Virus record (IMG/VR): IMGVR_UViG_3300042892_005961
Location: 1-64,000 of that record
DNA: 64,000 bases
Direction: 5' to 3' (one strand)
How positions within the stretch are numbered: position 1 is the first letter of the stretch; every line of letters begins with the position of its first letter. Under the pieces are notes generated by a model. That model worked only from the letters and a program-made list of their open reading frames with translations. It was not told where the DNA came from and did no database searches. Shown piece by piece: positions 23,573-63,999 of the stretch. A program made the position numbers and the translations under genes.

Positions 23573-24034
23573 TTAATTAAACCAACTTGGGATGTCTCTA
23601 TTCTTCCAAGTACAGAACAGTCTTTTCTCCCCCATATAATAATCTCTATATGATTGAATGGTATTCACTCCTTTGTACTCGTCTGGCATGGCCATAGGAG
23701 GTGGTGTAAATTTAACATCAGGGATTTTAGGGTGATTATCACAACACCACAGGATCACATCATAGGACTTATGTGTCTTCCCATATCTATGGGTATATTC
23801 ATAACAAAGGTGGATACCAAGTTCACATAACCATATGTAATTATGGAGATCTTGTCTAACCCATTTTGCTGATGGATGATTAACGTGGGATAATTTATAT
23901 TGTGCCTGACCTCCCGTTGCCCAATGAGATCCACAAAGTAATTGGGCAGTTTCTAATATCATTTTAACAACGTGTTTATCGTTATGATATTGTGCACATT
24001 TTGTTGGGGACTTATCTAAATAAAATATATTCAT
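23573..24034 (-). CDS. pyrimidine-dimer DNA glycosylase / endonuclease V-like protein
   Basis: MNIFYLD...HNDKHVVKMILETAQLL, HVNHP, EYTHRYGKTH, AMPDEYK, YRDYY. Confidence 0.8.
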   Translation of the reverse strand: MNIFYLDKSPTKCAQYHNDKHVVKMILETAQLLCGSHWATGGQAQYKLSHVNHPSAKWVRQDLHNYIWLCELGIHLCYEYTHRYGKTHKSYDVILWCCDNHPKIPDVKFTPPPMAMPDEYKGVNTIQSYRDYYMGEKRLFCTWKNRDIPSWFN

Positions 24035-24420
24035 TATACATTCATTTTCAATACACACTCTAAATGATCGGTATTAACTAAGTAGTCATATTCAATCTCA
24101 GACGTATCTCTACCACAATAACTACAAGTCATTTGTGGTTCAGGTGTTTCTCCTGTGATCTCCCAACATTTTTGTCTAACCTTTGCACCGAGTTCTTGGT
24201 CGTTAGATGTGTTTAGGATGTCTTCGGCCGAAATAGTAATAAGGGTTGTTCTGTTTCTCATAGTCCTACTTACATAATCATCAGATGGTCCATAGGTTCT
24301 GTCGTAACATTGTTTACAACATTGACCAGCTCCTTCAACATAACCATATCTTAAATCGATATGTGTGTTTACATCAATCGTAGTTTGCTTTCCGCAGATA
24401 ATACAAATTTCATTTGGCAT
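24034..24420 (-). CDS. zinc-finger hypothetical protein
   Basis: CIIC, CKQC, CSYC, HLEC. Confidence 0.6.
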   Translation of the reverse strand: MPNEICIICGKQTTIDVNTHIDLRYGYVEGAGQCCKQCYDRTYGPSDDYVSRTMRNRTTLITISAEDILNTSNDQELGAKVRQKCWEITGETPEPQMTCSYCGRDTSEIEYDYLVNTDHLECVLKMNV

Positions 24421-24474: not shown

Positions 24475-25875
24475 TTAAGAATTTGTTCCTAAATTTTTAG
24501 CAATTTTATTTACTTGTCTTGCGATTGATCCAACCACCTTTTCGTAGTTAGGAGCCCCCGCGTATCTTAAATTTTTTTGGTTAACAAAATTGTTAATTAG
24601 GTCTTGTGCGGTTCTACCTTTACCTATATAATCTTTTGCTATAAGATTATAATATGCATCAATACCCGATTGTGTTGAACTATGGTTTATCGTACCTCCA
24701 TCATCTGTGTTTCCAACGTTAAATGGATTTTTTGTTTTTATTGGTAGACTATTTGCATCGGGGTTTCCAATACCTCCTTCAGCTGCCAATTGTCCTAAAG
24801 CCAATTCAGGTGGGATATATTTGTTACGTTTCTCAAATGTTCTTTTAGCACTTGATGCCATCATATCTCCCGTGATATTCAATAAGTTAGGGGTTCTTGA
24901 TTTTATGAATACATCACATATTTCACTATACATCTTATAACCTTCTTCCGTTGTTAAATCTAAATCAGTAAAGACATCGCTTCCTCCTGTTGTAACCTTA
25001 TCTATTAATTGACTTAATTGTTCTTTAGTTACACCCTTTAATTCTAATTTAGATGCCATTGATTGAGCCATCTCAGGTGTAACCGATTCCACTGGACTTT
25101 TATTGGTGTCCGAGTTACTCATAGTGACTGACTCTCCACCACCTATTTCGGTTGATACCCAATTAAATAATTCTTCCATTTTACCCGCATCACCACTAAC
25201 ATCTAAACCTTCACCTACCTTTTTACCATTAACAGTTTGACTAAATGTATTATAATGATGACTATTACCCACATGTACGGGGTTAACTTTAGATGTGTAA
25301 GGATTCTCACCAGCGTGTAAACCTAATTCTAATGCCTTTTCCATTACTTTAACAGCAACTTGAGCATCCGTAAACCCAAAATGGATATGTGTATCGTGAT
25401 TTGACCATTTAATACCGTCTACTTTATTACCAGCATCAATACCCCATGGCATCTTATTCCACACCATTTCATCAATACCTGATATAAAACCTTCACTTAT
25501 AATATTATTATCTGTCTTATATTTTTTAACCGCATCCGCAGTCTCGGGACCAAACAACCCATCAACACCATGTCTTGGTAATTCATACCCTAATAGGACT
25601 AATCCAATTTGAATTGTTTCCACTTCTTTTTGATGTTGCATTGAACCTAACTTCTGTTGGGTAACCGGTTCTTTGATTGATTTAAGATCGGTAAGGAATT
25701 TTCTAACATCATCATCTACAAAATCCGCCTTTGACGGAACGTCTATTGGTTTAATGGCATTCGTGTCTCCTCCTTGAATTAACTTAGTTAGTAAGTCGTC
25801 CTCCAACAATACTTTCTTACCATAAGTGATACTGTGTATTCTTTCCAGTTCTTCTTTTAAGGTTCTTTTCTTCAT
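24475..25875 (-). CDS. putative virion-associated peptidoglycan hydrolase (PG-binding + His-rich + glucosaminidase/lysozyme-like domains)
   Basis: GVDGLFGPETADAVKKYK (PG_binding_1); ELALGQLAAEGG, NPFNVG, RYAGAPNYE. Confidence 0.7.
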   Translation of the reverse strand: MKKRTLKEELERIHSITYGKKVLLEDDLLTKLIQGGDTNAIKPIDVPSKADFVDDDVRKFLTDLKSIKEPVTQQKLGSMQHQKEVETIQIGLVLLGYELPRHGVDGLFGPETADAVKKYKTDNNIISEGFISGIDEMVWNKMPWGIDAGNKVDGIKWSNHDTHIHFGFTDAQVAVKVMEKALELGLHAGENPYTSKVNPVHVGNSHHYNTFSQTVNGKKVGEGLDVSGDAGKMEELFNWVSTEIGGGESVTMSNSDTNKSPVESVTPEMAQSMASKLELKGVTKEQLSQLIDKVTTGGSDVFTDLDLTTEEGYKMYSEICDVFIKSRTPNLLNITGDMMASSAKRTFEKRNKYIPPELALGQLAAEGGIGNPDANSLPIKTKNPFNVGNTDDGGTINHSSTQSGIDAYYNLIAKDYIGKGRTAQDLINNFVNQKNLRYAGAPNYEKVVGSIARQVNKIAKNLGTNS

Positions 25876-25903: not shown

Positions 25904-26065
25904 TTATCCTAAATAATCCTTGTCCTCGTCGTCAAAATCTCCGAACAAGTCTTCTCCCTTATAATCAGGATGATTCTCTTTCATATGGTCAATACCTCTA
26001 ACCCAAAAGAAAGAAACTATCGCCGCTAAAACAAAACTACATCCAATACCAATTACGTATCCCAT
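25904..26065 (-). CDS. small membrane protein (53 aa)
   Basis: Hand-translated MGYVIGIGCSFVLAAIVSFFWVRGIDHMKENHPDYKGEDLF... Confidence 0.6.
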   Translation of the reverse strand: MGYVIGIGCSFVLAAIVSFFWVRGIDHMKENHPDYKGEDLFGDFDDEDKDYLG

Positions 26066-26137: not shown

Positions 26138-26860
26138 TTAAAATAAAGTTTTAATTGTTTTTGTTAAATCAAACCTATCATATATTGTGTTGTATTTTTC
26201 AATAAAATTGTCATTCATCTTTAAATTACCGGTAAAATGTTTACTTGAATTTATTTTTTCTAATTTAAAATTAATATTAAGTTTATTAGACACCCATTCT
26301 TCAAGTTCGTATAATTTATCGATATCAAACCAAATAATTTTTTTATGATGTTGGTGCCACGTTGAACATGGTAGAAATAATACTGATAACATATTTGCCA
26401 GTCGGCCTTCATACTCAATAAGTTTATGTTTTATAATAAAGTGGGACACATATTCTTGATGGGTATCACGCAATACATCAGATGGTGTGATATCAAAAAA
26501 TATATCATTTTCATCCATTTTAATTAATTTATTATAATTTTCTACCAAGCCTGTTCTATTTTCCTCATCAATAATATGATACCATAATGATAAAAATCGT
26601 TCGTATCTATTACGTTTAACCGAAATTACTTCATAATTATTTCCGAATTTAGATTCTAAATAATCTAATGGTTCGTGCATATGATAGAATGTATCTGCAA
26701 TTATTTCATTATCAAGTGTTATATCAATATTATTATATTCAATTTGATGTTCATTCATTAAAGTTTTTACATTTAATTTATTTTTAGCACAGGAAATAGC
26801 AAATGATGTGGATGCACATCTGGGTAAACTAATGTATATGAATTTGTTTTCTACTAACAC
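26138..26860 (-). CDS. sulfotransferase family 2-like protein
   Basis: FIYISLPRCASTS (5'-PSB), RNRYERFLSLW (3'-PB); ends KTIKTLF. Confidence 0.7.
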   Translation of the reverse strand: MLVENKFIYISLPRCASTSFAISCAKNKLNVKTLMNEHQIEYNNIDITLDNEIIADTFYHMHEPLDYLESKFGNNYEVISVKRNRYERFLSLWYHIIDEENRTGLVENYNKLIKMDENDIFFDITPSDVLRDTHQEYVSHFIIKHKLIEYEGRLANMLSVLFLPCSTWHQHHKKIIWFDIDKLYELEEWVSNKLNINFKLEKINSSKHFTGNLKMNDNFIEKYNTIYDRFDLTKTIKTLF

Positions 26861-26875
26861 AATAATAATTTTAAA

Positions 26876-27145
26876 TTAAAATAAAGTTTTGGTAGTCTTT
26901 GTGGGTGGAAAATATAGACTATCCACCGATTCCCATTTTTTTAATGGACAATCATTAAATGTTGCACTAAATATTTTTTTGGAAAGTGGACATCCACATT
27001 CATTGCATTTATAATACGATAAAATAGTTTTAACTTTGGATGGACATGTATTGCATATATCATGTCTTTTTTCAGCCAATTCTAATTGTTTATCAGTTGG
27101 GTTTGCGGATGCAATCCAAGCTTTTGCAATTTTTAAAAAATCCAT
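26876..27145 (-). CDS. small Cys-rich (DUF6171-like) metal-binding protein
   Basis: RxxICxxCP...CNECGCPL..K...CPLKKW; ends KTTKTLF. Confidence 0.7.
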   Translation of the reverse strand: MDFLKIAKAWIASANPTDKQLELAEKRHDICNTCPSKVKTILSYYKCNECGCPLSKKIFSATFNDCPLKKWESVDSLYFPPTKTTKTLF

Positions 27146-27165
27146 GTAACTTATTTTTTATTTGA

Positions 27166-27243
27166 TTAAGAATTTGCAGTGATAATTAATGCACCAATTT
27201 GTGTCATTGTACTATCTATTGTTTGCTTTTCTATTAATGTCAT
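27166..27243 (-). CDS. 25-aa micro-ORF (MTLIEKQTIDSTMTQIGALIITANS)
   Basis: Hand-translated ORF filling the gap between the Hint gene and the Cys protein. Confidence 0.45.
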   Translation of the reverse strand: MTLIEKQTIDSTMTQIGALIITANS

Positions 27244-27266
27244 TTTATATTATTTTAAATTTTTTA

Positions 27267-28793
27267 TTAGAACCATCCGTAACATGCAGGACAAAAAGTA
27301 TTTTCTACTCTACATAGTCCATTACCATCGGTATAACAACAGATGTAACCTTTATTACAAGATGCCTGTGCACACGCTGGTCCGCCGGTACAATCTTGTG
27401 CATTGTGTTCAATTGAAACATATGTTTTATTTGCATCAACATCCGATTTAGTTAAGAATAAGTGAGCGTTTTCAACACTAATTTCAAATCCACCAAAAAA
27501 TTGATGAAGTTGTTCTATGTTTGAAATTTCTTTAGTTACGAATGATGGTGTCGTTGGATTTGTTGTATCTAATAATAAAATACTATCTCCAATTATCATT
27601 TTGTATTCACTAGTTACAACATCACCCAATATCAAAAATCTAACTTCGTTGTTTCTAATTGATAGATAAGATGATCCCGTATTATCATACCAATCACTAC
27701 CATCTGCAAATGTTAATTTAATAACATTAGTATAGGTATTTACTCTTTTTAGTGCCGTAATCGCATTTGTGCTATATGTGGTTCCAGTTTGTAATTCGGA
27801 TAACGATATCCTATAATTGGTTGTATCATTTAAATTATCCGCATCGAATGGATTTGGTACATCAATTGTTTTAATAATATCACCAACCACCAATTCAGTT
27901 GCAAGTTTGGTACTACCATCTGCCATTTCCACTAAATCCGTATCTAATAATTTTGGTAACCTCATTTGATAATCACCACTAATGTATTTATTTCTATCTT
28001 GTGTTAATTCAAATGTTGTAACATCAAATATAGAATCTGTTTCTACTGAGTTATCACACACTCTTGTATAACCACCCAATGATATTGACTCTAAATTAGG
28101 AGGGAATAATAAATTTAAACCTCTAAATACTTTTATATGATTTTCAAATAATTGTGTTGCATTAAAATAAAATTCCATTAAAAAATAATCATCCGTAACT
28201 ACATTTGAAATAAGTGTATTAAGCTCTTCTTGTGTTGTTACTTTGTAAAATTTAGGATATACTTCTCTGTCGTATTGTGGTAATCTATCTTTTAATATAA
28301 AATTAGGATGTCCACCATTATCATTGATGGTTGTTATATTATTAACTAAATTATTGTTTTCATCCATATACGCAAATTGAGAACCAAATGACGACTCTTT
28401 AATTAAATTTAAAAAATTAATTTTATCTTTACAATATGTATCGTCCACTAACGCTGTCGTATCGTAAGCACTTCTAATGATTAATGTTTGGTCGGTGTCT
28501 TCAACAGATGGTATAGTTATTGCATTTGATGCGACGATGTGGTCTTCAAATTCAATTCCTAATGTTTGACATGAAGATGATAAATTATTTTTAAAAACCG
28601 TCATTCCACCTATATAAATAACTTTAGTAAACCCGTTTTCAGTTATAAATGAATTAAGTGTTGTTAAATCGATACAATCAATATCATCTTCGATTTTATT
28701 ACGATGCCAACCAACTGCGGTATTGATTTCAATTGGTACTAAATTACCAATTTTATTGTACATAAAGTCCGATCCAATTAAGACTGTTCTCAT
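27267..28793 (-). CDS. circularly permuted ATP-grasp-like + Hint domain + C-terminal Cys-rich peptide
   Basis: N-terminal GSDF..GNLVPIEINT precedes FILK and LMEFY; Hint block A LVEMADGSTKLATELVVGD; Hint end HLFL...IEHN; then 44 aa with 8 Cys. Confidence 0.7.
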   Translation of the reverse strand: MRTVLIGSDFMYNKIGNLVPIEINTAVGWHRNKIEDDIDCIDLTTLNSFITENGFTKVIYIGGMTVFKNNLSSSCQTLGIEFEDHIVASNAITIPSVEDTDQTLIIRSAYDTTALVDDTYCKDKINFLNLIKESSFGSQFAYMDENNNLVNNITTINDNGGHPNFILKDRLPQYDREVYPKFYKVTTQEELNTLISNVVTDDYFLMEFYFNATQLFENHIKVFRGLNLLFPPNLESISLGGYTRVCDNSVETDSIFDVTTFELTQDRNKYISGDYQMRLPKLLDTDLVEMADGSTKLATELVVGDIIKTIDVPNPFDADNLNDTTNYRISLSELQTGTTYSTNAITALKRVNTYTNVIKLTFADGSDWYDNTGSSYLSIRNNEVRFLILGDVVTSEYKMIIGDSILLLDTTNPTTPSFVTKEISNIEQLHQFFGGFEISVENAHLFLTKSDVDANKTYVSIEHNAQDCTGGPACAQASCNKGYICCYTDGNGLCRVENTFCPACYGWF

Positions 28794-28962
28794 AATTTAC
28801 TAATTTTTAAATAAAATAGCAAATATAAAGTGTCTATGCTAGATGGATTTCTTGAATCCTTTGGGTTATTATAGATAAATATACATAAATTGTTTAAATA
28901 ATCAATATCATTAAATTAAATTATCAAAACAATTTGTTATTTATGACTGTAATTGGGTGTTT

Positions 28963-29646
28963 TTACTTGTTAAATTTACAAAAATTACGTTTAAACTCCT
29001 TTTCGTACACTTTTAATTCCTTTGTGTTTAACCCATTATATAGTCCTGTGGACATAAATGCTTGGATTTCATCATCAATAATTTTCTTATCATCAACATA
29101 TCCCATCTTAATAAGTTTCTTTTTTAACTTATTATAATGAGTTAATTTAATGTTACCAATCAGTTCATTTACCTTTTTCTTATAATCTTTGTTGGTAAAA
29201 TATAGTCCGTGAGCAATTTCGTGATTCATAGTTCCTTTATCTTTAGAACTTGCACCAATCAAATACCAATCACATCTTGTTCCGTTATTTTTATTTTGTG
29301 AATCAATTGCACAATAAAAATAAATGTCATTCATTATCACATCATACTCGGTTTCTTTATAAAACGCATCCACCCCTCCGTCCAATATATTTGATGGGAT
29401 ATTATATCCAGCCCAATCATCAGGATATGTAAATGTTCTTTTCTTCCACATATCTTTGTAATGTCTCATATATTCCATCCAAGTAAAACGTTTACCTCTA
29501 AACTTTTTATATGGTGATTCATAATATTCTTGATAACGACAGAATAACATTGCACGATCATAATCATCATCAATTTGGGCACAATATATTTGTGGAACAA
29601 TCTCTTTAACCACACCTTTAACTAAAGGATGTTTAATTTTTTTCAT
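28963..29646 (-). CDS. hypothetical protein with HExxH motif
   Basis: MLFCRYQEYYESP, HEIAHG, DEIQAF. Confidence 0.6.
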   Translation of the reverse strand: MKKIKHPLVKGVVKEIVPQIYCAQIDDDYDRAMLFCRYQEYYESPYKKFRGKRFTWMEYMRHYKDMWKKRTFTYPDDWAGYNIPSNILDGGVDAFYKETEYDVIMNDIYFYCAIDSQNKNNGTRCDWYLIGASSKDKGTMNHEIAHGLYFTNKDYKKKVNELIGNIKLTHYNKLKKKLIKMGYVDDKKIIDDEIQAFMSTGLYNGLNTKELKVYEKEFKRNFCKFNK

Positions 29647-40352: not shown

Positions 40353-40550
40353 ATGAAAGTAGAAAAAAAATTAACGAGTGTCCATGTATTGGAAGACGTT
40401 TACAGAAAATTTAAAATAAATGCAATTGATGGTAATATTAATTTACAAAAGTTAGTTAATCGTACGTTAGATCTTTATGTTAAAGATGATGTGTTTAGAA
40501 ATAAAATAAATAACTACACAGATTTATCTGTGAGTGGATCAAAATATTAA
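40353..40550 (+). CDS. RHH-like small regulator
   Basis: KLTSVHV strand plus NLQKLVNRTLDLY helix; heads the glycosylation operon; TATATTTG just upstream. Confidence 0.6.
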   Translation: MKVEKKLTSVHVLEDVYRKFKINAIDGNINLQKLVNRTLDLYVKDDVFRNKINNYTDLSVSGSKY

Positions 40551-40551
40551 T

Positions 40552-41913
40552 ATGGGTAAACCAAGAATATTATTACTATCAGATGATTTACGAATGACAT
40601 CAGGTATTTCCACAATGTCTAGAGAATTTGTAATGGGTACTTTGGATAGATTTAATTGGGTTCAATTGGGTGCTGGAATTAATCATCATGAAGCTGGTAA
40701 ATTTGTTGACGTTAACGAAGATGCTAGACAAAAGACAGGAGTTAAAGATGCTGAATTAAAAATTATACCATATAATTCATATGGTGATATTGTAATGTTA
40801 AGAAAGATATTATCAGAAATGAAAATAGATGCTATCTTACATTTTACTGATCCCCATTATTGGCAATGGTTATATGACTCCGAACATGAAATAAGACAAC
40901 AAGTCCCAATTTTATATTATCATATATGGGACAATTTACCTGACCCAATGTATAATAAAGATTACTACGAAAGTTGTGATTGGTTAGGATGTATCTCTAA
41001 ATTAACATATGGTATTGTTAATCGTGTTGGTAAAATGGAAGATGAGTTTCGTAAACCATTACAAGATTGGCAAATTAGTTATGTTCCTCATGGAATAAAT
41101 CCAGATACATTTAAACCATTAGAAGATAAAGAATTGATTGATGTTAAAAAGGGTTTATTCGGTGATAAAGAATATGACTTTGTTTTATTTTTTAACAGTA
41201 GAAATATTCGTAGAAAACAACCTTCAGATGTTATTGAATCATTTAAATTATTTTGTGATAAGTTAACCAAAGAACAATCAGACAAATGTGTTTTAGTTAT
41301 GCATACAACTCCGATTGATAACAATGGTACAGATTTATATGCGGTTAGAGATAAAATATGTCCTAATTATGATGTGGTCTTCTCAACCAATAAAATAGAA
41401 AGTGATATTTTAAATAAATTATATAATATCGCCGATTGTACAATTAACATTGCAAATAATGAAGGATTTGGTTTAGGTACCGCCGAAAGTATTATGGCTG
41501 GCACACCCATCATTGTAAGTGTAACAGGTGGTTTACAAGATCAATGTGGTTTTAATTACACTGCAGATGATTACATCAATATTAAAACTTTACACAATAA
41601 ACAAATTCATAAAGATACACCTCACGGTGTGTGGGCTAAACCGATATGGCCTTCCGCAATTAACATTAATGGTTCTCCATTAACACCTTACATTTATGAT
41701 GATAGAGTTAATGATGAAGAAGTTGCTGATGCTATTACTGAAATGTATTTGTTAGGTAAAGAAAAAAGAAAAGAGAATGGTCAAGTGGGAAGAGAGTGGG
41801 CAATCAATAACTTATCGTCAAAAGTTATGTGTGATGCTATGAGTGAAGGAATACAAAAAACAATAAAGAATTTTACACCACGTGAAAGATTTAATTTATA
41901 TAAAGTAGTTTAA
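40552..41913 (+). CDS. GT4 (GT-B) glycosyltransferase
   Basis: VPHGIN, RNIRRKQ, NEGFGLGTAESIMAGTPII. Confidence 0.88.
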   Translation: MGKPRILLLSDDLRMTSGISTMSREFVMGTLDRFNWVQLGAGINHHEAGKFVDVNEDARQKTGVKDAELKIIPYNSYGDIVMLRKILSEMKIDAILHFTDPHYWQWLYDSEHEIRQQVPILYYHIWDNLPDPMYNKDYYESCDWLGCISKLTYGIVNRVGKMEDEFRKPLQDWQISYVPHGINPDTFKPLEDKELIDVKKGLFGDKEYDFVLFFNSRNIRRKQPSDVIESFKLFCDKLTKEQSDKCVLVMHTTPIDNNGTDLYAVRDKICPNYDVVFSTNKIESDILNKLYNIADCTINIANNEGFGLGTAESIMAGTPIIVSVTGGLQDQCGFNYTADDYINIKTLHNKQIHKDTPHGVWAKPIWPSAININGSPLTPYIYDDRVNDEEVADAITEMYLLGKEKRKENGQVGREWAINNLSSKVMCDAMSEGIQKTIKNFTPRERFNLYKVV

Positions 41914-43175
41914 TGAAACCAACAATATTATTTAGAGGACCAGTTAAAACAAGAAGTGGTTATGGTTCACACTCAAGAGATTTATTAGAGGCACTATATC
42001 AAATGAATATATTTGATATTAAAATTGATAGTTGTATGTGGGGGAATACTCCCATGACTGCTTTGGAACCGGATAATACATTTCATAAATGGATTGAAAG
42101 TAATATCGTTTATAAATTTGACGGTCTACCTGATATCTATATACAAGTAACGGTACCTAATGAATTTAAAAGATTTGGTAAATTTAATATAGGTATCACC
42201 GCAGGAATTGAAACAACTGTTGCACCTAAAGATTGGATTGATGGTTGTAATCAAATGGATTTAATAATTACAACATCTAATTTTTCTAAAGATGTTTTAT
42301 TATCTACAGTTTATGATGAAAGAAATAAAACAACAAATGAATTAACTAATCAACATAAGATAACAAAACCAATTGAAGTGTTATTTGAAGGTGTTGATAC
42401 ATCAATCTTTAATGATGTAATCAATAAAGATTTTAAATTAGATATTAAAGAAAACTTCGCATTTTTATTTGTTGGTCATTGGTTAAAGGGAAACATAGGT
42501 CAAGACAGGAAAGACATTGGTATGTTGATTAAATGTTTTGTTGAGGCATTTAAGGATGGTAATGATATGCCGGCGTTGGTATTAAAAACATCATCATCAA
42601 GTTTTTCAATTAAAGAAAGAGAAGTTTTTACTAAAAGAATAAAAGATATTGTTTCTGATATTAAAAATCCTCCGTCAATTTATTTATTATTTGGTGATTT
42701 AAGTAATAAAGAAATGAATGATCTATATAACCATCCAAAAATTAAACTAATGGTTTCACTAACTAAAGGTGAGGGATTTGGTAGACCTTTATTAGAATTT
42801 ACAATGACTGGTAAACCTGTAATGGCTTCCAATTGGTCGGGTCATAAAGATTTTTTATCTGTTGATAAATCAATTATGATTGGTGGTAAATTAACAGATG
42901 TTGACGATAGTGCAATTGATCAGTTTATTATTAAAGGATCTAAATGGTTTACCGCAAATTATGGTGAAGTTGCTGAAATTATGAAAATAGCTAGAAACGA
43001 TTATAGTAATTTCTTACTAAAATCTTTAAAACTTAAAGAAGAGAATAAACAAAACTTTTCTTTAGAAAAAATGAAAGAACGTTTTGAGGAGATATTAAAA
43101 CCATATTCAATTGCGTTTCAACCTCCTCCACAACAAACCAAATTAATTTTACCTAAATTAAATAAAGTTAAATAA
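41913..43175 (+). CDS. GT4 (GT-B) glycosyltransferase
   Basis: SGYGSHSR, DRKDI, GEGFGRPLLEF, WSGHKDF. Confidence 0.88.
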   Translation: MKPTILFRGPVKTRSGYGSHSRDLLEALYQMNIFDIKIDSCMWGNTPMTALEPDNTFHKWIESNIVYKFDGLPDIYIQVTVPNEFKRFGKFNIGITAGIETTVAPKDWIDGCNQMDLIITTSNFSKDVLLSTVYDERNKTTNELTNQHKITKPIEVLFEGVDTSIFNDVINKDFKLDIKENFAFLFVGHWLKGNIGQDRKDIGMLIKCFVEAFKDGNDMPALVLKTSSSSFSIKEREVFTKRIKDIVSDIKNPPSIYLLFGDLSNKEMNDLYNHPKIKLMVSLTKGEGFGRPLLEFTMTGKPVMASNWSGHKDFLSVDKSIMIGGKLTDVDDSAIDQFIIKGSKWFTANYGEVAEIMKIARNDYSNFLLKSLKLKEENKQNFSLEKMKERFEEILKPYSIAFQPPPQQTKLILPKLNKVK

Positions 43176-43405
43176 TGAACTTCAAATTTTTTAAAGGTGA
43201 TGAAACACCTACATTATGTTTTACACCTCATAGATATGAACCAGAAAATGCTGAATTTTGTTTTCAATTTGGTGATGAAGAACCCGTTGTTTTCGCTTCG
43301 GGTCCAAATGATTGTAGTATTCGTTTAAGTCCAACGAGTAATACTGAAATGACGTTTAATGATAATGGTAGAGTATTTAAATTATTCGCAAGAGAAAGAC
43401 AATAA
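43175..43405 (+). CDS. hypothetical protein, N-terminal FKFF motif
   Basis: Starts MNFKFFKG. Confidence 0.65.
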   Translation: MNFKFFKGDETPTLCFTPHRYEPENAEFCFQFGDEEPVVFASGPNDCSIRLSPTSNTEMTFNDNGRVFKLFARERQ

Positions 43406-43406
43406 T

Positions 43407-43649
43407 ATGGGAGTTAGAGAGTTTAGATTTTTTCACGGGATCACAATTCAATCGGAAGGTATTCAAAATATCGTTAGAACACTACGTGCTCAATGGAGAC
43501 CTGAGTTGGTTGATGATTTAAATACTGTTTACTCAATTGATGCTGAGGCAGAATTAACAAGATTAATGTCGGAACAAATTGTGGAAGAAATTGACAACGA
43601 AGTAATAAATATATTAACGGGAAGAATAAACGGAGGACAAAGAGCATAA
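43407..43649 (+). CDS. FRFF-motif miniprotein containing a T4-like major capsid protein fragment
   Basis: MGVREFRFFHG then RTLRAQWRPELVDDLNTVYSIDAEAELTRLMSEQIVEEIDNEVI, recognisably gp23-like. Confidence 0.7.
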   Translation: MGVREFRFFHGITIQSEGIQNIVRTLRAQWRPELVDDLNTVYSIDAEAELTRLMSEQIVEEIDNEVINILTGRINGGQRA

Positions 43650-43650
43650 T

Positions 43651-44271
43651 ATGAAAATAAGTTTTGCAATTACAGTTTGTAATGAATTAGAGGAAATAAA
43701 AAAATTGGTTTCATTTTTATTTAAACATAAAAGAAAGGAAGACGAGATTGTTATTCTCTATGATGAGAAGAACGGCAATCCCGAAATATTAGATTTCTTA
43801 TTACCATATAATAAATTCCCTCACGTTCAAACGTGGAGAGGGTTTGATTTTGAAAGTAACTTTGCAGATTGGAAAAATAAATTAAATGACTACTGTCAGG
43901 GAGATTATATCTATCAAATAGATGCCGATGAAATGGTTAGTGAATATATAGTTAAAAATCTTAATCAAATATTAGAATTAAATCCAAAGGTTGATTTAAT
44001 ATTTGTTCCTCGTATTAATACAGTTAATGGTATAACACAAGAACACATTAATAAATGGGGTTGGAATGTTAATGAAAAAGGATGGGTAAACTTTCCCGAT
44101 GCTCAAGGACGAATATATCGTAAAGGTATGAGTTGGTATGGTAAGGTTCACGAACGAATAATAGGTGGTCAAAAATTTTCATCATTACCTTTAGATGAAG
44201 AATATTGTATACAACACCATAAGACGATTGATCGTCAAGAAAAACAAAACAATTACTATAGTTCATTATGA
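43651..44271 (+). CDS. GT2 glycosyltransferase
   Basis: ISFAITVCNE, NFADWKN, QIDADE, VHE. Confidence 0.88.
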   Translation: MKISFAITVCNELEEIKKLVSFLFKHKRKEDEIVILYDEKNGNPEILDFLLPYNKFPHVQTWRGFDFESNFADWKNKLNDYCQGDYIYQIDADEMVSEYIVKNLNQILELNPKVDLIFVPRINTVNGITQEHINKWGWNVNEKGWVNFPDAQGRIYRKGMSWYGKVHERIIGGQKFSSLPLDEEYCIQHHKTIDRQEKQNNYYSSL

Positions 44272-44882
44272 GTTATCAATACCCAAAACATTTTAAGTAC
44301 CCAGAAGGAGAACGTTATTTCTTTTTAAATCATGTAGATTCATGGAAACATTTCTTACCTAACTATGGTGATGAACCAAGAGTGTGTTTAGAGATAGGTG
44401 CATTGTATGGTGGATCTTCAGTTTATATTTTAGATGAATTCTGTAAAAAAGAAGGTTCACATCATTATATAATGGATATCAATACAAATGAATTTATTGA
44501 AAATAATATTAAACCATATAAAGATAAGGTAACATATATTTTAGGTGAATCGGCCGATAGTTTTAAAACATTTAACCATAATGGTGAAACTAAAGAGTTT
44601 TTAGACTTTGTTTACATAGATGGTAATCATATGTGTAAATATGTTTTAGAAGATGCTGTAAATGCATTTTACTGTTTGAAAGATTATGGTTATATTATCT
44701 TTGATGATTACGGTGGAGGACTTGAACAAGATCAATATTTACAAGTTAAAACTGGTGCTGACGCGTTTTATCATGGATATCACAAATATTTAGAAATAGT
44801 GTATAACGGTTATCAAGTCATTATGAAAAAAATAAATTATATAAATGAAAATGATTTAAAAGAAAATTATTATAAAGTATGA
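44268..44882 (+). CDS. class I SAM methyltransferase (Methyltransf_24-like)
   Basis: LEIGALYGGS, DFVYIDGNH, IIFDDY. Confidence 0.85.
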   Translation: MSYQYPKHFKYPEGERYFFLNHVDSWKHFLPNYGDEPRVCLEIGALYGGSSVYILDEFCKKEGSHHYIMDINTNEFIENNIKPYKDKVTYILGESADSFKTFNHNGETKEFLDFVYIDGNHMCKYVLEDAVNAFYCLKDYGYIIFDDYGGGLEQDQYLQVKTGADAFYHGYHKYLEIVYNGYQVIMKKINYINENDLKENYYKV

Positions 44883-45874
44883 AAATATTAATTACAGGAG
44901 TTGCGGGATTGTTAGGTTCAAGATTATCGGATTACATTATTGAAAATCATTCAGATGTTTATATCGTTGGTATTGATGATATGAGTGGTGGATATAGGGA
45001 GAATGTTAATCCAAAGGTTGAGTTATGGGAAATGAATTTAGTTAATGGTAATATTAGTGAATGTTTTGAAAGACATCAATTTGATTATGTTTACCATTTC
45101 GCAGCATATGCCGCTGAGGGATTATCCCCATTCATTAGAACATATAACTATCAAAACAATTTAGTTGCAACGTCGCGCATTATTACACAATGTATTAAAC
45201 ACAATATTAAAAGATTAGTATTCACGTCTACATTGGCGGTATATGGTCACCAGGATGGTAATATATTTGACGAAATTCAAGTACCTAAGCCTATTGACCC
45301 GTACGGTGTTGCTAAATATGGTTGTGAAATGGATATACAGATTGCTGGTGAGCAACATGGACTTGATTGGTGTATTATTAGACCACACAACGTTTACGGT
45401 GTTAAACAGAACGTATGGGACAAATATAGAAACGTATTAGGTATATGGATGTATCAACATACAATCAACGAACCTATGACAATATTTGGTGACGGTACAC
45501 AAACAAGAGCTTTCAGTTATATTGATGACAGTCTTGAACCATTATGGAAAGCATCTCAAGATATTAGAGCATCAAAAGAAATAATTAACTTAGGTGGTGT
45601 TAAAGAATACTCAATAAACGAAGCTAATGAAATTTTACGTGAAGTAGTTGGTGGAGGTGAGGTAAAATATTTTGAAGGTAGACATGAAGTGAAACACTCA
45701 ATACCTACTTGGCAAAAATCAATTGACTTATTAGACTTTGAACATAAAACAGATTTGAAGGAAGGTTTAACTAAAATGTGGGAGTGGGTTAAAAGTCAAC
45801 CAGTTAGAGAGAGGTTCGTGTGGCCGTTCTACGAATTAGATAAAGGAATTTATTCATTTTGGAAAACAAAGTAA
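44879..45874 (+). CDS. NAD-dependent nucleotide-sugar epimerase/dehydratase
   Basis: ITGVAGLLG, YGVAK, RPHNVYG, GDGTQTRAFSYIDD. Confidence 0.92.
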   Translation: MKILITGVAGLLGSRLSDYIIENHSDVYIVGIDDMSGGYRENVNPKVELWEMNLVNGNISECFERHQFDYVYHFAAYAAEGLSPFIRTYNYQNNLVATSRIITQCIKHNIKRLVFTSTLAVYGHQDGNIFDEIQVPKPIDPYGVAKYGCEMDIQIAGEQHGLDWCIIRPHNVYGVKQNVWDKYRNVLGIWMYQHTINEPMTIFGDGTQTRAFSYIDDSLEPLWKASQDIRASKEIINLGGVKEYSINEANEILREVVGGGEVKYFEGRHEVKHSIPTWQKSIDLLDFEHKTDLKEGLTKMWEWVKSQPVRERFVWPFYELDKGIYSFWKTK

Positions 45875-45875
45875 T

Positions 45876-47470: not shown

Positions 47471-47473
47471 ATT

Positions 47474-49791: not shown

Positions 49792-49792
49792 T

Positions 49793-51968: not shown

Positions 51969-52005
51969 ACATTATAATATAATAAAAAAAGGTGAAAATG
52001 TAAAA

Positions 52006-52224
52006 TTAATATGTACCTGAACCTGATAAACCACCAAAAGATGCTCCTTCAGCAGTTTCAGATCCACTTGGGATACTTGCAACCCCCGAATACGATCTAT
52101 TACGACCAACACCTAAAGTTGAATTTAAACCCACCTCTATTGAACCGGCAGTAGCTGTTAATCCTAAAACTACACTAATTCTTCCCATACTTACTTCGGT
52201 TCCCGTTGCTGGTACTGTACCCAT
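52006..52224 (-). CDS. small Gly/Ser/Thr-rich putative virion protein
   Basis: MGTVPATGTEVSMG start; downstream of the tail fibre; TATTTAT at 52255-52261. Confidence 0.55.
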   Translation of the reverse strand: MGTVPATGTEVSMGRISVVLGLTATAGSIEVGLNSTLGVGRNRSYSGVASIPSGSETAEGASFGGLSGSGTY

Positions 52225-52294: not shown

Positions 52295-52306
52295 CATTTA
52301 ATGTAA

Positions 52307-59268: not shown

Positions 59269-60039
59269 TCAAATCAAATTTTGTATATTTTTTGATACGA
59301 AATCGTATAGTTTATGTGAGTAGGTTTTATTATGTATAGGACCTGGATGATAATTATCCACACCTAAATCTAAATATTCTCCGTAATCCCCATCAAACCT
59401 ATTAGGTTCATCATATTCAAGTGATTTTAATTCTCCACCATTCCAAATCCAATTACATTTTTTTGATTCTAAAAAATATTTTATTAATAAATGATTTTTA
59501 TACCAATTTATTGTGTCCTCATTATTATTTTGTAAATAAGTTAAATATTCTTGTGTTTTAATACCGTCATCCGTCTCCTTTAAATAACCCCAAGAAGTTG
59601 TTGGAATAAATGGTTCAATTCCACCATCTTCGGTATAAATTTCTCTTCTATGTGGGAATGTATACATTATTAAAACCAAATCTGGTTTAATCAAATCATA
59701 ATAACTCATTAAACATCTACATATAAAATCATTACTTCTTCCACCTGTTCCGAAATTAAAATTTACCGCATTTTCCATATGACTACAAAATTGTGCAGGC
59801 CAAGTTTCATTATCATTTACACCAACTCCTTCCGTAATTGAACAACCCAAAGACATTACTTTAAATCCTTCTTTTTTTATACTATCCCCCCTAAATCCTA
59901 ATTCATTATAGGTGTATGTACATAAACCTGTATTATCTGATCCCGATGTTGTATATGTTCTGCCGACCCTTTCTTTTAGAGAATATTTATAAGATGATAT
60001 TTCAAATCCTTCTGGATTCCAATATTTTATTACTTTCAT
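59269..60039 (-). CDS. SGNH/GDSL-like protein
   Basis: YNELGFRG, LGCSITEG, GRSND, YHPG; ends QNLI. Confidence 0.7.
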   Translation of the reverse strand: MKVIKYWNPEGFEISSYKYSLKERVGRTYTTSGSDNTGLCTYTYNELGFRGDSIKKEGFKVMSLGCSITEGVGVNDNETWPAQFCSHMENAVNFNFGTGGRSNDFICRCLMSYYDLIKPDLVLIMYTFPHRREIYTEDGGIEPFIPTTSWGYLKETDDGIKTQEYLTYLQNNNEDTINWYKNHLLIKYFLESKKCNWIWNGGELKSLEYDEPNRFDGDYGEYLDLGVDNYHPGPIHNKTYSHKLYDFVSKNIQNLI

Positions 60040-60536
60040 ATTAATTTATTTATATCAAATTTTACATGTTCACTTTGTAAAAACCAAAGTAATGAGTATC
60101 TTTCCCCACTTAAAATAGGTGTAATTTCATGTTCAATTCTCACATCAAATAAATAAGTATTTCCCATTTCTTTATTTAACATATATTCATTTGGATTATA
60201 TAATTTAAAATCTCCTCCCTCAAAGTCATCATTTAATAAAACTCCCACCGCATATACTCTATTATTTCTAATATCATTATGTTTTCCAAACCAATCACCA
60301 TTTGTAAATTTATGAAAATGTATTGTTTTTTTTATTGTTCCAATTTTAATGTTTGTTTCTTTTTCCACAAAAACCTTCAACTTATCAAATAACCAAATAG
60401 TATTTTTATTATATTCTATGCTCGTTGATTCATATATTCTATCTTTATAGTTCCAATTTTGTTTTTTTGATTTTGTTATATCAATAATAGATTGACACTC
60501 TTGTTGATTAAATAATATTTTTTGTATTAAAATCAT
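60036..60536 (-). CDS. 2OG-Fe(II) oxygenase (prolyl-4-hydroxylase-like)
   Basis: HND, LNDDFEGG, HEITPI.SGERYSL; ends NKLI. Confidence 0.85.
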   Translation of the reverse strand: MILIQKILFNQQECQSIIDITKSKKQNWNYKDRIYESTSIEYNKNTIWLFDKLKVFVEKETNIKIGTIKKTIHFHKFTNGDWFGKHNDIRNNRVYAVGVLLNDDFEGGDFKLYNPNEYMLNKEMGNTYLFDVRIEHEITPILSGERYSLLWFLQSEHVKFDINKLI

Positions 60537-61162
60537 AATAACATTTTATTTTTCTTTTTAAATTTATTTATAAATAAATCGGATAATTGTAGATGACCAT
60601 TTTCACTAAAATGCCAATCATTTAATTCACCATTTGTTTCTATAAATATGGTTTCAAATTTATTTAAAAACATACAATCCAATCGTTGGTCAAATGGTGT
60701 CCAATGAATTATTTTTTTATCTAAATTGTTTAATAATTTAATCCAACTATTTACTTCATTACAATATCTTATATCATCTCTGTTTAAAAGAATCTCAATA
60801 AGAGTAGATTCGGATATTTTTGTTTTGTCAATTTCTTTAGTTGAAAATTTATCGTAATTTGGTAAAATTGTTATCCAATCATTAGAAACTAACCTAAATC
60901 TCAACGGAGATGACCATCCAATTATTACTAAATCGTTTTTTTTAATATTTTTTACGTTATCACAAAATTTTTGTAATATAGAATAATTGTCAGATGCATT
61001 ATCAGCTAGATTAATTAATTCTAAATTTAATTTTTGTGAAATGATTTCACTAAACCCTTTTGGTGTATAACCTTTCCAATTTACATAATTATTTGTCCAA
61101 TTAGATTCAAATGAAAATCCAGCAGAAAAACTATCTCCAAATATATAAAGTTTTTGTTTCAT
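60533..61162 (-). CDS. SGNH/GDSL-like protein
   Basis: FGDSFS, ASDN, DWHFSENGH; ends KMLL. Confidence 0.7.
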   Translation of the reverse strand: MKQKLYIFGDSFSAGFSFESNWTNNYVNWKGYTPKGFSEIISQKLNLELINLADNASDNYSILQKFCDNVKNIKKNDLVIIGWSSPLRFRLVSNDWITILPNYDKFSTKEIDKTKISESTLIEILLNRDDIRYCNEVNSWIKLLNNLDKKIIHWTPFDQRLDCMFLNKFETIFIETNGELNDWHFSENGHLQLSDLFINKFKKKNKMLL

Positions 61163-61176
61163 TTAAATTAAATAAT

Positions 61177-61764
61177 TTATATTAGATGCATTTTTTCTAA
61201 TATATCTCTTTTCAATATAGTTAAAACAATTGACCACCTTTCACCATCAACTATTTCTTTTATTTCATGTAAGGTTGTGGCATCATATGCAATCGCATTG
61301 CCCACTTCTTTACTTAACAAAATTTCTTTATTGTTTTCATCGTAACAAATATATTCACCACCAATATAATTGTCATTTAATTGTATTCCCAAATTCCATC
61401 TTCTATTTGGAAAGTTACTATTAAAATCCATATGTTTCATAAATGAATCACCTTTTGAATACTTGTGTAGTGAACAACCAACTGGCTTATTATCGGGATT
61501 ACGTTCAACTTTTGAAACCATTAAAAACCAACTAAAAAGTTTTTCAAACATCCATTCCGATTCTGTATCATTTACTATATCCCAAACATTAAAAAATTTT
61601 CCCAATTTTTTACCATTCTCCATTTTTGTAAATTCGTTAATTCTTCTATTATCCAAATCTAATCTATATTCTGATTTTCTAAATGGTAAATCGGTATAAA
61701 TTTTTGTATATGATAATATTTTATCACATTCTTCTTTTGTAAATATTTTTTCTTGATAAATCAT
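61177..61764 (-). CDS. 2OG-Fe(II) oxygenase
   Basis: HMD, LNDNYIGG, HEIKEIVDGERWS; ends KMHLI. Confidence 0.85.
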   Translation of the reverse strand: MIYQEKIFTKEECDKILSYTKIYTDLPFRKSEYRLDLDNRRINEFTKMENGKKLGKFFNVWDIVNDTESEWMFEKLFSWFLMVSKVERNPDNKPVGCSLHKYSKGDSFMKHMDFNSNFPNRRWNLGIQLNDNYIGGEYICYDENNKEILLSKEVGNAIAYDATTLHEIKEIVDGERWSIVLTILKRDILEKMHLI

Positions 61765-61774
61765 ATTAATTTAA

Positions 61775-62251
61775 TTATATAATATTTTTTATTTTTTTAC
61801 TAACCCATACTACCATCATCTCTCTACGGCCTGATTTTATCTCTTTAACTTCATGATATTCTTTCTGTCCATCGAATACTACCACATCTCCTTTTTTAAA
61901 GGGAATTAAATTGTCATTAACATATAACTCCCCTCCTTCGAAACTATCATTTAACATAATCAAATACGTTTTATTTGCTTTAATATCTAGATGTTTTTTG
62001 GCATAATAACCGGATTCATATTTAATATAGTGTAATGAATATATTATTTCATCTTCTTCTAATGTTACATATTTTAATAATGTATCAACTAATATCTTAT
62101 TAGTTAAATCACAATAAAATATTTCTTTTAAATGAATTACATTTTTAAAATCGTGATATGATTTTATTTTTTTATTTTCATTTCCAAAATTATAATTTTT
62201 TAACATTATATCAATGTCATCATAATTAATTTTATTTTTAAATATATTCAT
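61775..62251 (-). CDS. 2OG-Fe(II) oxygenase
   Basis: HLD, LNDSFEGG, HEVKEIKSGRR; ends KNII. Confidence 0.85.
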   Translation of the reverse strand: MNIFKNKINYDDIDIMLKNYNFGNENKKIKSYHDFKNVIHLKEIFYCDLTNKILVDTLLKYVTLEEDEIIYSLHYIKYESGYYAKKHLDIKANKTYLIMLNDSFEGGELYVNDNLIPFKKGDVVVFDGQKEYHEVKEIKSGRREMMVVWVSKKIKNII

Positions 62252-62257
62252 TATGTA

Positions 62258-62815
62258 CTAAATAAGTGTTTTTGTTTTATTAATTCTATATTTGTTACCA
62301 ATTGGAAATCCTATATTTTTAACTTCTTCTATATTAAGATAATTAACAATTTTTTTAAATCCATTATTATAATATAATTCTTCGTAAGAAATTGTAAAAA
62401 AATCTTTATTAACATATTTTTCTTTAAATTCAGATTTTAATATCTTAAAATATTCTGTTTTTTCTTTGGTAATTGAATTTTCTGATGTTTTATAAACATA
62501 TGGTAGATGCCAGTTATCCGTATTTACCGCATTTAAAAATGATTCCAATTGTTCTTGTGTATTTTCTCTATATAGTACAATAATTTTATCGGATACATTT
62601 AACAATGAATTCCAATTTAAAGTAGGATAATATATTTCTTTAATACAAAGATGTTTAGTTTTATATTTATAATCTTTTGGGTCAATATTATTTTGAAACC
62701 ATTTACTATTAGGATTTTCCGGTTCAAATAGTGTGGTAAAGTTTTTATTAAAATAAAACCAATTCGTAAGATTTGTTGAACCACTTCTCGGTTCTGCTAA
62801 AATTGTGATAATCAT
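62258..62815 (-). CDS. sulfotransferase-like (Stf0-like) protein
   Basis: LAEPRSGST, FEP, LYREN, ISYEELY; ends KTKTLI. Confidence 0.7.
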   Translation of the reverse strand: MIITILAEPRSGSTNLTNWFYFNKNFTTLFEPENPNSKWFQNNIDPKDYKYKTKHLCIKEIYYPTLNWNSLLNVSDKIIVLYRENTQEQLESFLNAVNTDNWHLPYVYKTSENSITKEKTEYFKILKSEFKEKYVNKDFFTISYEELYYNNGFKKIVNYLNIEEVKNIGFPIGNKYRINKTKTLI

Positions 62816-62833
62816 ATTAATAATATTTTTATA

Positions 62834-63421
62834 TTAAAGTATTGTTTTTTTTTCCTTTAAAATCGGAAAATCAAATAATACATTTGCGGCAATTACAATT
62901 CTATCGATAGTAGAATTAATTGAAGTATCAGGTCTATGATATACATCTGCAGGGAAAATAACAAGTTCATTTTCTTCTGGTAAAAACATCCTTTGTACAT
63001 TATCTTCTTTATCCATAAAAAATAATTTACCATCGTTCCCAGTTAAATTATTTGGCATTTGTACATAATAAGTGAATGTGCAATTGCTTTCTATTGATTT
63101 TTTTACATGTGGAGCAAACATTGTGTGGTTATGATAATGAGATTGTGTATCCTCATCCCTAGAAATAAAAATCCAAGAATATAAACAATAATCAACTTCT
63201 TCAACTTTTTTATCTTTTTTAAATAATTCTATACATCTCTTAACACCATAATTTAAAATAAAATCAATTTCTTTACATGTTAATACTATGTTAGTTTGAA
63301 TACCTGGTGTCAGATGTGATGGTTCATAATTAAATAATGATACGTTTTGATATATTTTTTTTATCAAAATTTCTTTTTCATATGGATATTTTATTTTTTC
63401 TCTATATATTTTATCAATCAT
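62834..63421 (-). CDS. 2OG-Fe(II) oxygenase-like (cupin) protein
   Basis: HNH, TYYVQMP, GKLFF, VIFPADVYH, RIVIAAN; ends KKTIL. Confidence 0.75.
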   Translation of the reverse strand: MIDKIYREKIKYPYEKEILIKKIYQNVSLFNYEPSHLTPGIQTNIVLTCKEIDFILNYGVKRCIELFKKDKKVEEVDYCLYSWIFISRDEDTQSHYHNHTMFAPHVKKSIESNCTFTYYVQMPNNLTGNDGKLFFMDKEDNVQRMFLPEENELVIFPADVYHRPDTSINSTIDRIVIAANVLFDFPILKEKKTIL

Positions 63422-63999
63422 AGTAAACTAATTATATTTTTTGTTTTAAGATTTGTTTCATAAATCCACCCACTTATAGAATATCTTTTATAATTTTTAT
63501 CAATAATTTCATCTACACAATGTAAATCTTTTATATTTTCAACATCAAAAATATTTAAACTATTAAATTTGGGTAATAATTTGTATGTAATATTATTTTT
63601 ATCATCTATGAAGTTTAAGCAACCACCTTTTTTTTCATCTGCATCTTTTGTTAAATTGTAAACAAAAGCATATTTTCTACCCAAAGATACATCGTTATGT
63701 GGAGATAAAAAATGGCCATATGTATATTTTGAGACAAATACACTCTGTGCTGTAAAAAACTTATCTTCTAACAATTTACTAATTTCTAATTCCAAATTTA
63801 ATAGAAAAAATAAGTTTTGTATAAATTCTTTGTTTTCAATACTACTATACCAATATGAAAATTCACCTTCTTTAAATTTTGATTTTTCATATTCATAAGA
63901 TTTTTTATGTTTTGAATTTGTAATCCAATCAGTTTGAGAATCGATTATATCATATACATTATTTGCAATACCATCAGATAAAAAATTTTCTATTTGTAT
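63418..63999 (-). CDS. 2OG-Fe(II) oxygenase (5' end outside the window)
   Basis: Frame is open from 63999 (IQIENFLSDG...); HND, GGCL, HCV, RYSISGW; ends KNIISLL. Confidence 0.8.
   Translation of the reverse strand: MQIENFLSDGIANNVYDIIDSQTDWITNSKHKKSYEYEKSKFKEGEFSYWYSSIENKEFIQNLFFLLNLELEISKLLEDKFFTAQSVFVSKYTYGHFLSPHNDVSLGRKYAFVYNLTKDADEKKGGCLNFIDDKNNITYKLLPKFNSLNIFDVENIKDLHCVDEIIDKNYKRYSISGWIYETNLKTKNIISLL

Follow-up and report, generated by a model that had tools for sequence, protein, structure and literature searches.

What might a virus make with a Hint-domain protein whose gene is followed, head to tail, by a 25-codon open reading frame (ORF), a small Cys-rich protein, and a sulfotransferase-like gene? 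The question is raised by a four-gene unit in the first 64 kb (64,000 nucleotides, here called the window) of the 211,168-bp viral record IMGVR_UViG_3300042892_005961 (~30% G+C). Near-identical DNA is found in lake-water metagenomes from more than 20 studies. From gene order, conservation, folds, and motifs, we favor with moderate confidence the reading that the unit is a phage-restricted cassette, akin to those for ribosomally synthesized and posttranslationally modified peptides (RiPPs), which would make a modified Cys-rich peptide. The genes, with coordinates from the ORF list, and the domains of the precursor protein are as follows (lengths in amino acids [aa]).

27267-28793, minus strand: precursor, 508 aa
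27966..28793, minus strand: N-terminal domain of the precursor, residues 1-276, conserved, with weak similarity to an ATP-grasp (glutathionylspermidine-synthetase-like) fold
27402..27965, minus strand: Hint domain of the precursor (intein/bacterial intein-like [BIL]), residues 277-464, ending in invariant E-H-N
27270..27401, minus strand: core peptide of the precursor, residues 465-508, hypervariable, with 8 Cys and 3 Tyr
27166-27243, minus strand: micro-gene (micro-ORF), 25 aa, ATG start
26876-27145, minus strand: Cys protein, 89 aa
26138-26860, minus strand: sulfotransferase-fold protein, 240 aa, with a GTG start that agrees with the N termini of its homologues

The gaps between these genes are 23, 20, and 15 nucleotides (nt) in the order of transcription, with no terminator-like sites between the genes. 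A preliminary description of this DNA had noted the same codirectional order of polyprotein, 25-aa ORF, 89-aa Cys protein, and sulfotransferase-like gene; it is borne out, and both the gene order and the micro-ORF are beyond chance.

The precursor and its relatives

Residues 277-464 of the precursor have the Hint fold. In this domain, E462, H463, and N464 are invariant among 36 sequences, and the His-Asn terminus for Asn cyclization is present. The N-terminal Cys, Ser, or Thr nucleophile is absent, the aligned first position being Leu (PKLLDTD...), and the block-B region of the Hint alignment, where T-x-x-H would be expected, contains no conserved His. Splicing or N-terminal cleavage is therefore unlikely, and only C-terminal cleavage by Asn cyclization is plausible. 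No Pfam family was assigned to the precursor, nor did it match the Pfam Hint/intein models, PHROGs, or NCBIfam.

The cores that follow N464 are 32 to 62 aa long and contain 6, 8, or 10 Cys residues, always an even number, in 36 of 36 sequences; each also has at least one Tyr (range, 1 to 6), and Pro accounts for 10.6% of residues. Mean pairwise identity falls from 58% in the N-terminal domain to 49% in the Hint domain and 21% in the core. As judged from these alignments, the gradient is the signature of a conserved leader/processing unit joined to a diversifying product, and the combination of a conserved leader part with a variable core that typifies RiPP precursors is found here.

Pattern scans of IMG/VR built on alignments turned up precursor relatives (43-70% identity) at 57 loci and, by way of the Cys protein, a further 13 loci. 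Single-sequence pattern scans of viral contigs found nothing, so that alignments including the paralogues were needed, and megablast and tblastn searches with the region and the precursor found nothing in 50,697 GenBank phage records. Among 185,579 bacterial and archaeal representative genomes there was one relative, a 2-kb contig of a metagenome-assembled genome (L073; CAIWXP010000069.1, 2,044 bp). This contig, binned as a “Candidatus Diapherotrites” archaeal genome, is most likely a misbinned viral fragment. The system is essentially confined to uncultured viruses.

The preliminary description had named a lack of synteny, or of conservation of the micro-ORF, among related phage loci as grounds for abandoning its proposal. 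Both proved to be conserved: the order of precursor, micro-ORF, Cys protein, and enzymes is retained across loci with 43-70% precursor identity, and the Cys protein is present in 42/42 nonredundant loci. The locus in the same genomic context as the window (L016; IMGVR_UViG_3300042691_007119) has an upstream 227-aa gene that is 88% identical (window 28790-29646) and a precursor that is only 53% identical, which suggests that the contents of a cassette turn over, by exchange or by diversification, much faster than the sequence on either side.

Proposed tailoring enzymes and their possible acceptor

The label “sulfotransferase-like” given earlier to the 240-aa protein is upheld by fold and motifs, without support from hidden Markov models. 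The protein has the alpha/beta fold of sulfotransferases. When the family profile is compared with heparan sulfate 2-O-sulfotransferase (HS2ST), a P-(K/R)-C-A-S-x-S loop aligns to the 5'-phosphosulfate-binding (5'-PSB) loop (PKTASTS), with P13, A16, S17, and S19 conserved and K or R at position 14; H-x-H (H60/H62) aligns to the catalytic histidines (HGH), and R-x4-R-x2-S (R83, S91) aligns to the 3'-phosphate-binding (3'-PB) motif (RDPIERLVS), with H60/H62, R83, and S91 invariant or nearly so. The residues of these three motifs are the most conserved in the family. It is an enzyme of a sulfotransferase-fold family found in neither Pfam nor NCBIfam, predicted to use 3'-phosphoadenosine-5'-phosphosulfate (PAPS). 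What fold and motifs settle is the chemistry of the cofactor and not the identity of the acceptor; no tyrosylprotein sulfotransferase (TPST) is among the top 50 structural matches. The family is present in 32/38 loci with enough downstream sequence.

The record contains a second cassette, 38 kb from the first, which is described by the following coordinates.

G000:C1:63638-68134, continuing into window 59269-63999: cassette 2 (locus L002)
59269..63999, minus strand: downstream end of cassette 2, with four 2-oxoglutarate (2OG)-Fe(II) oxygenases, a P-loop “PRSGST” protein, and GDSL/DUF6071-like genes

Cassette 2 has the order of the first: a 502-aa precursor (46% identical; record 65138-66634, just outside the window), a 25-aa ORF, a Cys protein of 87 aa, and a 229-aa protein related to the 240-aa one. 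Directly upstream of its precursor are a DUF2061 protein (2e-15), a 128-aa HxGH adenylyltransferase-family protein, and an adenosine-5'-phosphosulfate (APS) kinase (PF01583, 8.7e-18; TIGR00455, 3e-18). This trio occurs in 17-18 of 35 loci and adjoins the precursor in 14 of the 35; its context suggests that the adenylyltransferase-family protein would make APS. The P-loop “PRSGST” family (window 62258-62815 and relatives) was considered as a further sulfotransferase, which was not demonstrable (Sulfotransfer_3 E value, 0.044; nothing in PDB); its hhalign match to the 240-aa family covers the P-loop only.

In larger cassettes, additional genes separate the micro-ORF from the Cys protein or come downstream of the latter. 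They encode clear-cut peptide-modifying enzymes: P4H-type 2OG oxygenases (PF13640), an Asp/Asn beta-hydroxylase (PF05118), a radical S-adenosylmethionine (SAM) enzyme, and a Pfam-recognized sulfotransferase (PF03567/PF00685 above threshold). An hhalign comparison of the 240-aa family with a Pfam-positive neighbor gave a probability of only 6%. Colocalized tailoring enzymes that are conserved across genomes, a second hallmark of RiPP clusters, are thus present.

The Cys protein and the enzymes share a basic-then-hydrophobic C-terminal tail, mostly KTLI, KTLL, KSLI, or NKLI; KTLF is the ending of both the Cys protein and the 240-aa protein of the window. The tail has the form K-x-x-K-(T/S)-L-(I/L/F)-COOH and is found on most ORFs downstream of precursors in L003-L072, where its bearers include 2OG oxygenases, both sulfotransferase families, radical SAM and GDSL-like proteins, and others. 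Of the 300 distinct ORFs that lie up to 6 kb downstream of a precursor, 179 bear it, compared with 28 of 278 in the remainder of the same loci; the background is 0.9% per position. Because the tail codons vary synonymously, the constraint lies at the protein level. In the window, tail-bearing C termini belong to the ORFs at 26138-26860, 26876-27145, 60036-60536, 61775-62251, 62258-62815, and 62834-63421; no such tail is found on the precursor, on the micro-protein, or on the products of the PAPS genes. The K-(T/S)-L-(I/L) tail suggests docking on a common scaffold or receptor, and docking, targeting, or action as a degron are candidate roles.

Could these enzymes have another acceptor? The sulfotransferase-fold enzyme and the oxygenases might modify a nonpeptide target (a glycan of host or phage, a virion protein, or a small molecule), with their proximity to the precursor reflecting a shared hypervariable accessory region. 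Such a target would suit the best structural matches of the 240-aa protein, which are heparan sulfate 2-O-, N-, and 3-O-sulfotransferases, and the content of the window, which is rich in glycosyltransferases and has an FkbM methyltransferase; yet both cassettes of the record have their own copy of the sulfotransferase-fold gene, and PAPS genes adjoin the start of the precursor gene in 14 of 35 loci, as described above. Likewise, L016 has the same context without a sulfotransferase, and 6/38 loci lack the 240-aa family, but the order of precursor, micro-ORF, Cys protein, and enzyme is kept while precursors diverge, and the enzyme tail is common to the universally linked Cys protein. Collagen-like or tail-collar proteins have been proposed as substrates of linked hydroxylase/sulfotransferase/PAPS operons (PMC2938197), and the window does encode a collagen-repeat protein. 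On balance, we regard a nonpeptide target as unlikely.

The small genes and the surrounding sequence

In the 89-aa protein, the CxxC, CxxCGC, and CP motifs noted earlier were all found. Residues C31, C34, C47, C50, C52, C66, W10, R27, K57, and K70-W71 are invariant or nearly so, and the two knuckles of a zinc ribbon are present (C31-x2-C34 and C47-x2-C50, invariant, plus C52 and C66). No zinc-ribbon family model scored above threshold: the matches (DZR_2, TFIIB, L37e, and RPB12) were all below it, DZR_2 with 18.4 bits against a cutoff of 27, and DUF6171 matched only the paralogous Cys protein (20.8 bits against a cutoff of 27). The best PDB E value was 0.013, and there was a match to phrog_13558 (E value, 5e-9). 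The Cys protein has 1345 homologues; the 120 listed include no Pfam domain and are nearly all unnamed or “hypothetical,” and the nearest ESM Atlas clusters are all viral. Metal binding is plausible for this protein, which is only weakly zinc-ribbon-like. Relatives in cultured Rhizobium and Synechococcus phages are weak (E value, ~1e-3), stand in unrelated contexts, and are uninformative.

The constancy of this protein bears on a different reading of the locus, that of a polymorphic toxin-immunity module in which the Hint domain frees a variable C-terminal toxin and the micro-protein, the Cys protein, or both are the immunity factor. A HINT autopeptidase just ahead of a variable C-terminal toxin is the standard polymorphic-toxin layout (PMC3482391), and small genes follow the hypervariable core at once; however, immunity proteins normally covary with the toxin, whereas here the divergence of the cores (21% identity) has no counterpart in the micro-protein or the Cys protein, both of them well conserved. 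Neither of the two marks of such modules, an N-terminal trafficking domain and a covarying immunity gene, was found: the precursor has no signal peptide by inspection and no RHS, filamentous, or other trafficking domain, carrying an ATP-grasp-like domain instead, and the Cys protein bears the same tail as the enzymes. We therefore judge a toxin-immunity module to be distinctly improbable.

The micro-ORF, of 24 to 30 codons and with an ATG start, directly follows the precursor stop codon in 41/42 nonredundant loci, always within a 100-170-nt gap downstream of the precursor. It comes in two flavors, 25 aa and 29 aa, both of which end in ...IG-x-LI-x3-NS, and the micro-ORF of cassette 2 has the same length and is identical at 15/25 residues. 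Pairwise ratios of nonsynonymous to synonymous change (pN/pS) are 0.20 among the 29-codon forms (18 distinct sequences) and 0.55 among the 25-codon forms (16 distinct sequences). Both TCN and AGY codons occur for the final Ser, more than one stop codon is used, and the invariant residues are concentrated in ...IG-x-LI...NS. A 2OG oxygenase gene, and not that of the Cys protein, comes next in many loci, so that the link of the micro-ORF is with the precursor and not with any single start downstream. Comparison with Rfam gave no match. We conclude that the micro-ORF is a gene, whose translation we infer from its evolution, and that the micro-protein is probably a single amphipathic helix, with hydrophobic residues 3 to 4 apart by inspection.

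It is very improbable that the ORF is noncoding or only regulatory, be it a spurious frame in a conserved spacer or an upstream ORF that tunes the Cys-protein gene by being translated and not through its product. The ORF is very short, has no Shine-Dalgarno sequence, lies 20 nt ahead of the next start, and is not reached by the contigs of an RNA library, but its fixed place, its pN/pS values, Ser codon switches, varying stop, and invariant residues, its link to the precursor, and the lack of an Rfam match all speak against this.

In the sole locus without an ATG micro-ORF (L012:7488-7856), the Cys-protein gene is also aberrant, being extended at the N terminus and cut short at the C terminus; this locus is possibly a decaying cassette or an assembly error.

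Upstream of the precursor gene, the following elements were recorded.

28874..28881, minus strand: TATTTATC, promoter-like, agreeing with the phage motif TATTTATA at 7/8 positions, ~80 nt upstream of the precursor
28896-28891 and 28873-28868, minus strand: sigma-70-like pair TAAACA/TATAAT, score 10/12, overlapped by TATTTATC
28845..28859, minus strand: hairpin GGATT(28859-28855)-CAAGA-AATCC(28849-28845) with a 5-nt loop, in the ~80-nt leader
28820..28827, minus strand: TATATTTG, kept as TACATTTG in L016

The TATTTAT string noted earlier is present at 28881-28875 (minus strand) and is above chance as part of TATTTATA. In the whole record, 34-35 of the 62 copies of TATTTATA lie, in the sense orientation, within about 100-120 nt upstream of same-strand starts, against 9 for the reverse orientation. 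In most related loci the motif stands ~20-30 nt before the precursor ATG, and the L016 leader has an exact copy, with the rest of the leader largely conserved. We consider TATTTATA, which corresponds to the T4 late-promoter core read on the opposite strand, a candidate phage promoter. Sense copies stand 4-105 nt, mostly <30 nt, 5' of many starts, including those of large genes late in the record; examples in the window are at 1066, 13987, 15812, 23554, 25881, and 52254. Because the next copy is that at 25881, ahead of a 466-aa peptidoglycan hydrolase gene, the transcription unit may extend from ~28870 through a 53-aa ORF downstream of the four genes.

Two further features named in the preliminary description fared less well. 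The string TATATTTG is present at 28827-28820, as claimed, but its status as a general signal is unsupported, since TAnnTTTG, tried as a promoter of the Bacteroidota type, shows no enrichment (it precedes 18 genes in sense and 15 in reverse orientation). The GGATT/AATCC hairpin exists but is not significant (fold z-score, -1.24) and shows no compensatory change in L016, the sole relative sharing the leader, in which the arms are identical and the loop differs. The frequency of sigma-70-like sites here is not above that in shuffled sequence. Upstream in L016, a stretch resembling a tRNA proved not to be one.

Short contigs from a metatranscriptomic library (run X24) match 27755-27909, 28329-28497, and 28493-28772, all within the precursor gene, and two are identical to the window there; neither transcription nor operon structure can be demonstrated from contigs so placed.

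Just downstream of the cassette lies one further small ORF.

25904-26065, minus strand: membrane-type ORF, 53 aa, which may be cotranscribed; outside the conserved cassette, shared with L016 only

It is followed by the gene for the 466-aa protein (window 24475-25875), which has a PG_binding_1 domain and a weak glucosaminidase match, and this pair also trails the cassette in L016. The two may form a lysis module, and the peptide could be released at lysis. Elsewhere in the window, positions 40534-59237 form an accessory region rich in glycan enzymes, with several GT4 and GT9 glycosyltransferases and a 911-aa fusion of GT4 and FkbM methyltransferase; the collagen-repeat protein, with an S74 chaperone domain (52307-53653), is probably a tail fiber. 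A 161-aa DenV-like pyrimidine-dimer DNA glycosylase is encoded at 23573-24058 (Pfam Pyr_excise; phrog_624 at 3.9e-55). The 211-kb record does not encode bS21, a protein that marks known large Bacteroidota phages.

A proposed mechanism and known systems

We propose the following for the RiPP-like cassette. The four genes are probably transcribed as one unit from the promoter-like TATTTAT(A/C) element. The 508-aa protein would serve as leader and scaffold, its ATP-grasp-like and Hint domains holding the hypervariable 32-62-residue core. On this tethered core, the sulfotransferase-fold enzyme would act with PAPS from the phage APS kinase and the adenylyltransferase-family protein near the sister cassette, placing sulfate on Tyr or on hydroxylated residues; in other cassettes, hydroxylases and the radical SAM enzyme would also tailor the core. 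The tailed enzymes and the Cys protein may dock on a common receptor, with the micro-protein and the six-Cys protein as putative accessory subunits (adaptor, activator, or folding/metal factor). Since the Hint domain has no N-terminal nucleophile and retains the terminal His-Asn, it should cleave only C-terminally, and Asn cyclization would free the mature peptide, whose even Cys count would fit disulfides or other paired cross-links. The core of the earlier idea of a precursor-plus-tailoring cluster is thereby retained, and its specifics, Tyr sulfation and Cys/metal chaperoning, stay proposals.

A bolder version, which we find doubtful, is that large lake phages encode a venom-like peptide factory, with a self-cleaving ATP-grasp-Hint scaffold, a hypervariable, disulfide-rich core, at least eight unrelated enzyme folds recruited by their tail (sulfotransferases, prolyl/aspartyl-type hydroxylases, radical SAM, and others), and a stand-alone helix of 25-30 residues that would work in trans as an adaptor or as an activator resembling a leader. 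The ATP-grasp domain would perhaps ligate or cyclize the released peptide.

Several points weigh against the proposed mechanism. Product, cleavage, sulfation, and translation are deduced, not observed. The precursor has no export signal recognizable by inspection, which leaves the site of disulfide formation in question. In the window copy of the sulfotransferase-fold protein, the 5'-PSB Lys is replaced by Arg (position 14); Pfam and NCBIfam give no sulfotransferase match for this protein, PHROGs give nothing either, and the closest structures, as noted above, act on carbohydrates. Because L016 lacks the sulfotransferase in an exactly shared context, the gene is accessory here. No RiPP recognition element (RRE)/PqqD-like element was matched by Pfam in the cassette proteins scanned, in a search that was not exhaustive. 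The tail is found on 16/219 ORFs of the record, some of them far from either precursor. The X24 RNA contigs cover parts of the precursor gene and none of the micro-ORF, Cys protein, or sulfotransferase genes, and may reflect DNA carryover. Complex prediction for the precursor with the Cys protein, listed here as well, gave scores of 0.48, 0.01, and 0.00 and points neither way.

If the proposal is true, phages make diversified, multiply modified Cys-rich peptides, with a predicted set of sulfation, hydroxylation, and disulfides that is familiar chiefly from animal venom peptides and from proteins of the extracellular matrix. Release by a built-in Hint autoprotease instead of a leader peptidase would be a new logic for RiPP precursors, and phage “auxiliary” APS kinase genes would serve PAPS supply for sulfotransferases and not sulfur assimilation. 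A deeply conserved micro-protein would become available for study, and the targets of the peptides (host, competitors, or grazers) could reveal a new layer of lake phage ecology. The shared tail on unrelated enzymes is a directly testable candidate signal for recruitment or targeting.

Full-text searches of the literature found no description of this architecture or combination; its parts invite comparison with several systems. RiPP clusters include those with ATP-grasp enzymes (microviridin/graspetide), and Xanthomonas has, in RaxX-RaxST, a sulfated-peptide system with PAPS synthesis by RaxPQ. Like RiPP clusters, the cassette has a ribosomal precursor, a conserved leader-like part, a variable core, and adjoining tailoring enzymes; as with RaxX, a PAPS-dependent sulfotransferase would be served by dedicated APS kinase/adenylyltransferase genes. 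It differs from them in that the “leader” is a 464-residue ATP-grasp-like and Hint protein that should excise itself, the proteins scanned gave no match to an RRE/PqqD-like domain, the family of the sulfotransferase is unclassified and in fold closest to HS2ST, the obligatory partners include a conserved micro-protein and a six-Cys protein, and the cassette is viral.

The Hint domain and the enzyme also depart from their closest known counterparts. In BIL domains (BIL2 of the Tetrahymena BUBL1 locus, PDB 6tmm), the first residue is a nucleophile, whereas here it is Leu, no block-B His aligns, cleavage is plausibly C-terminal only, and the Pfam Hint/intein models do not detect the domain. Compared with HS2ST and Sulfotransfer_2-type enzymes, the 240-aa protein is 13-14% identical, has no membrane anchor, has Arg for Lys in the 5'-PSB loop of the window copy, and has no model match above threshold.

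Polymorphic toxins (Zhang et al. 2012; PMC3482391) resemble the cassette in having a Hint domain directly upstream of a hypervariable C-terminal module, with predicted autoproteolytic release. Unlike them, the cassette has no secretion/trafficking domain or repeats, its module is a 32-62-aa Cys-rich peptide and not an enzyme toxin, its small downstream genes are conserved and do not covary, and tailoring enzymes are present.

Iyer et al. (2010; PMC2938197) described tandem 2OG-dioxygenase arrays in cyanophages and bacterial hydroxylase-sulfotransferase-PAPS synthetase operons, predicting hydroxylation and then sulfation of a coencoded protein substrate. The substrates that they proposed are collagen-like or tail-collar proteins, or secondary metabolites, and their systems, unlike the cassette, have no Hint-bearing precursor, micro-protein, six-Cys protein, or common C-terminal tail. 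What the cassette shares with those systems is phage-borne arrays of several 2OG oxygenases.

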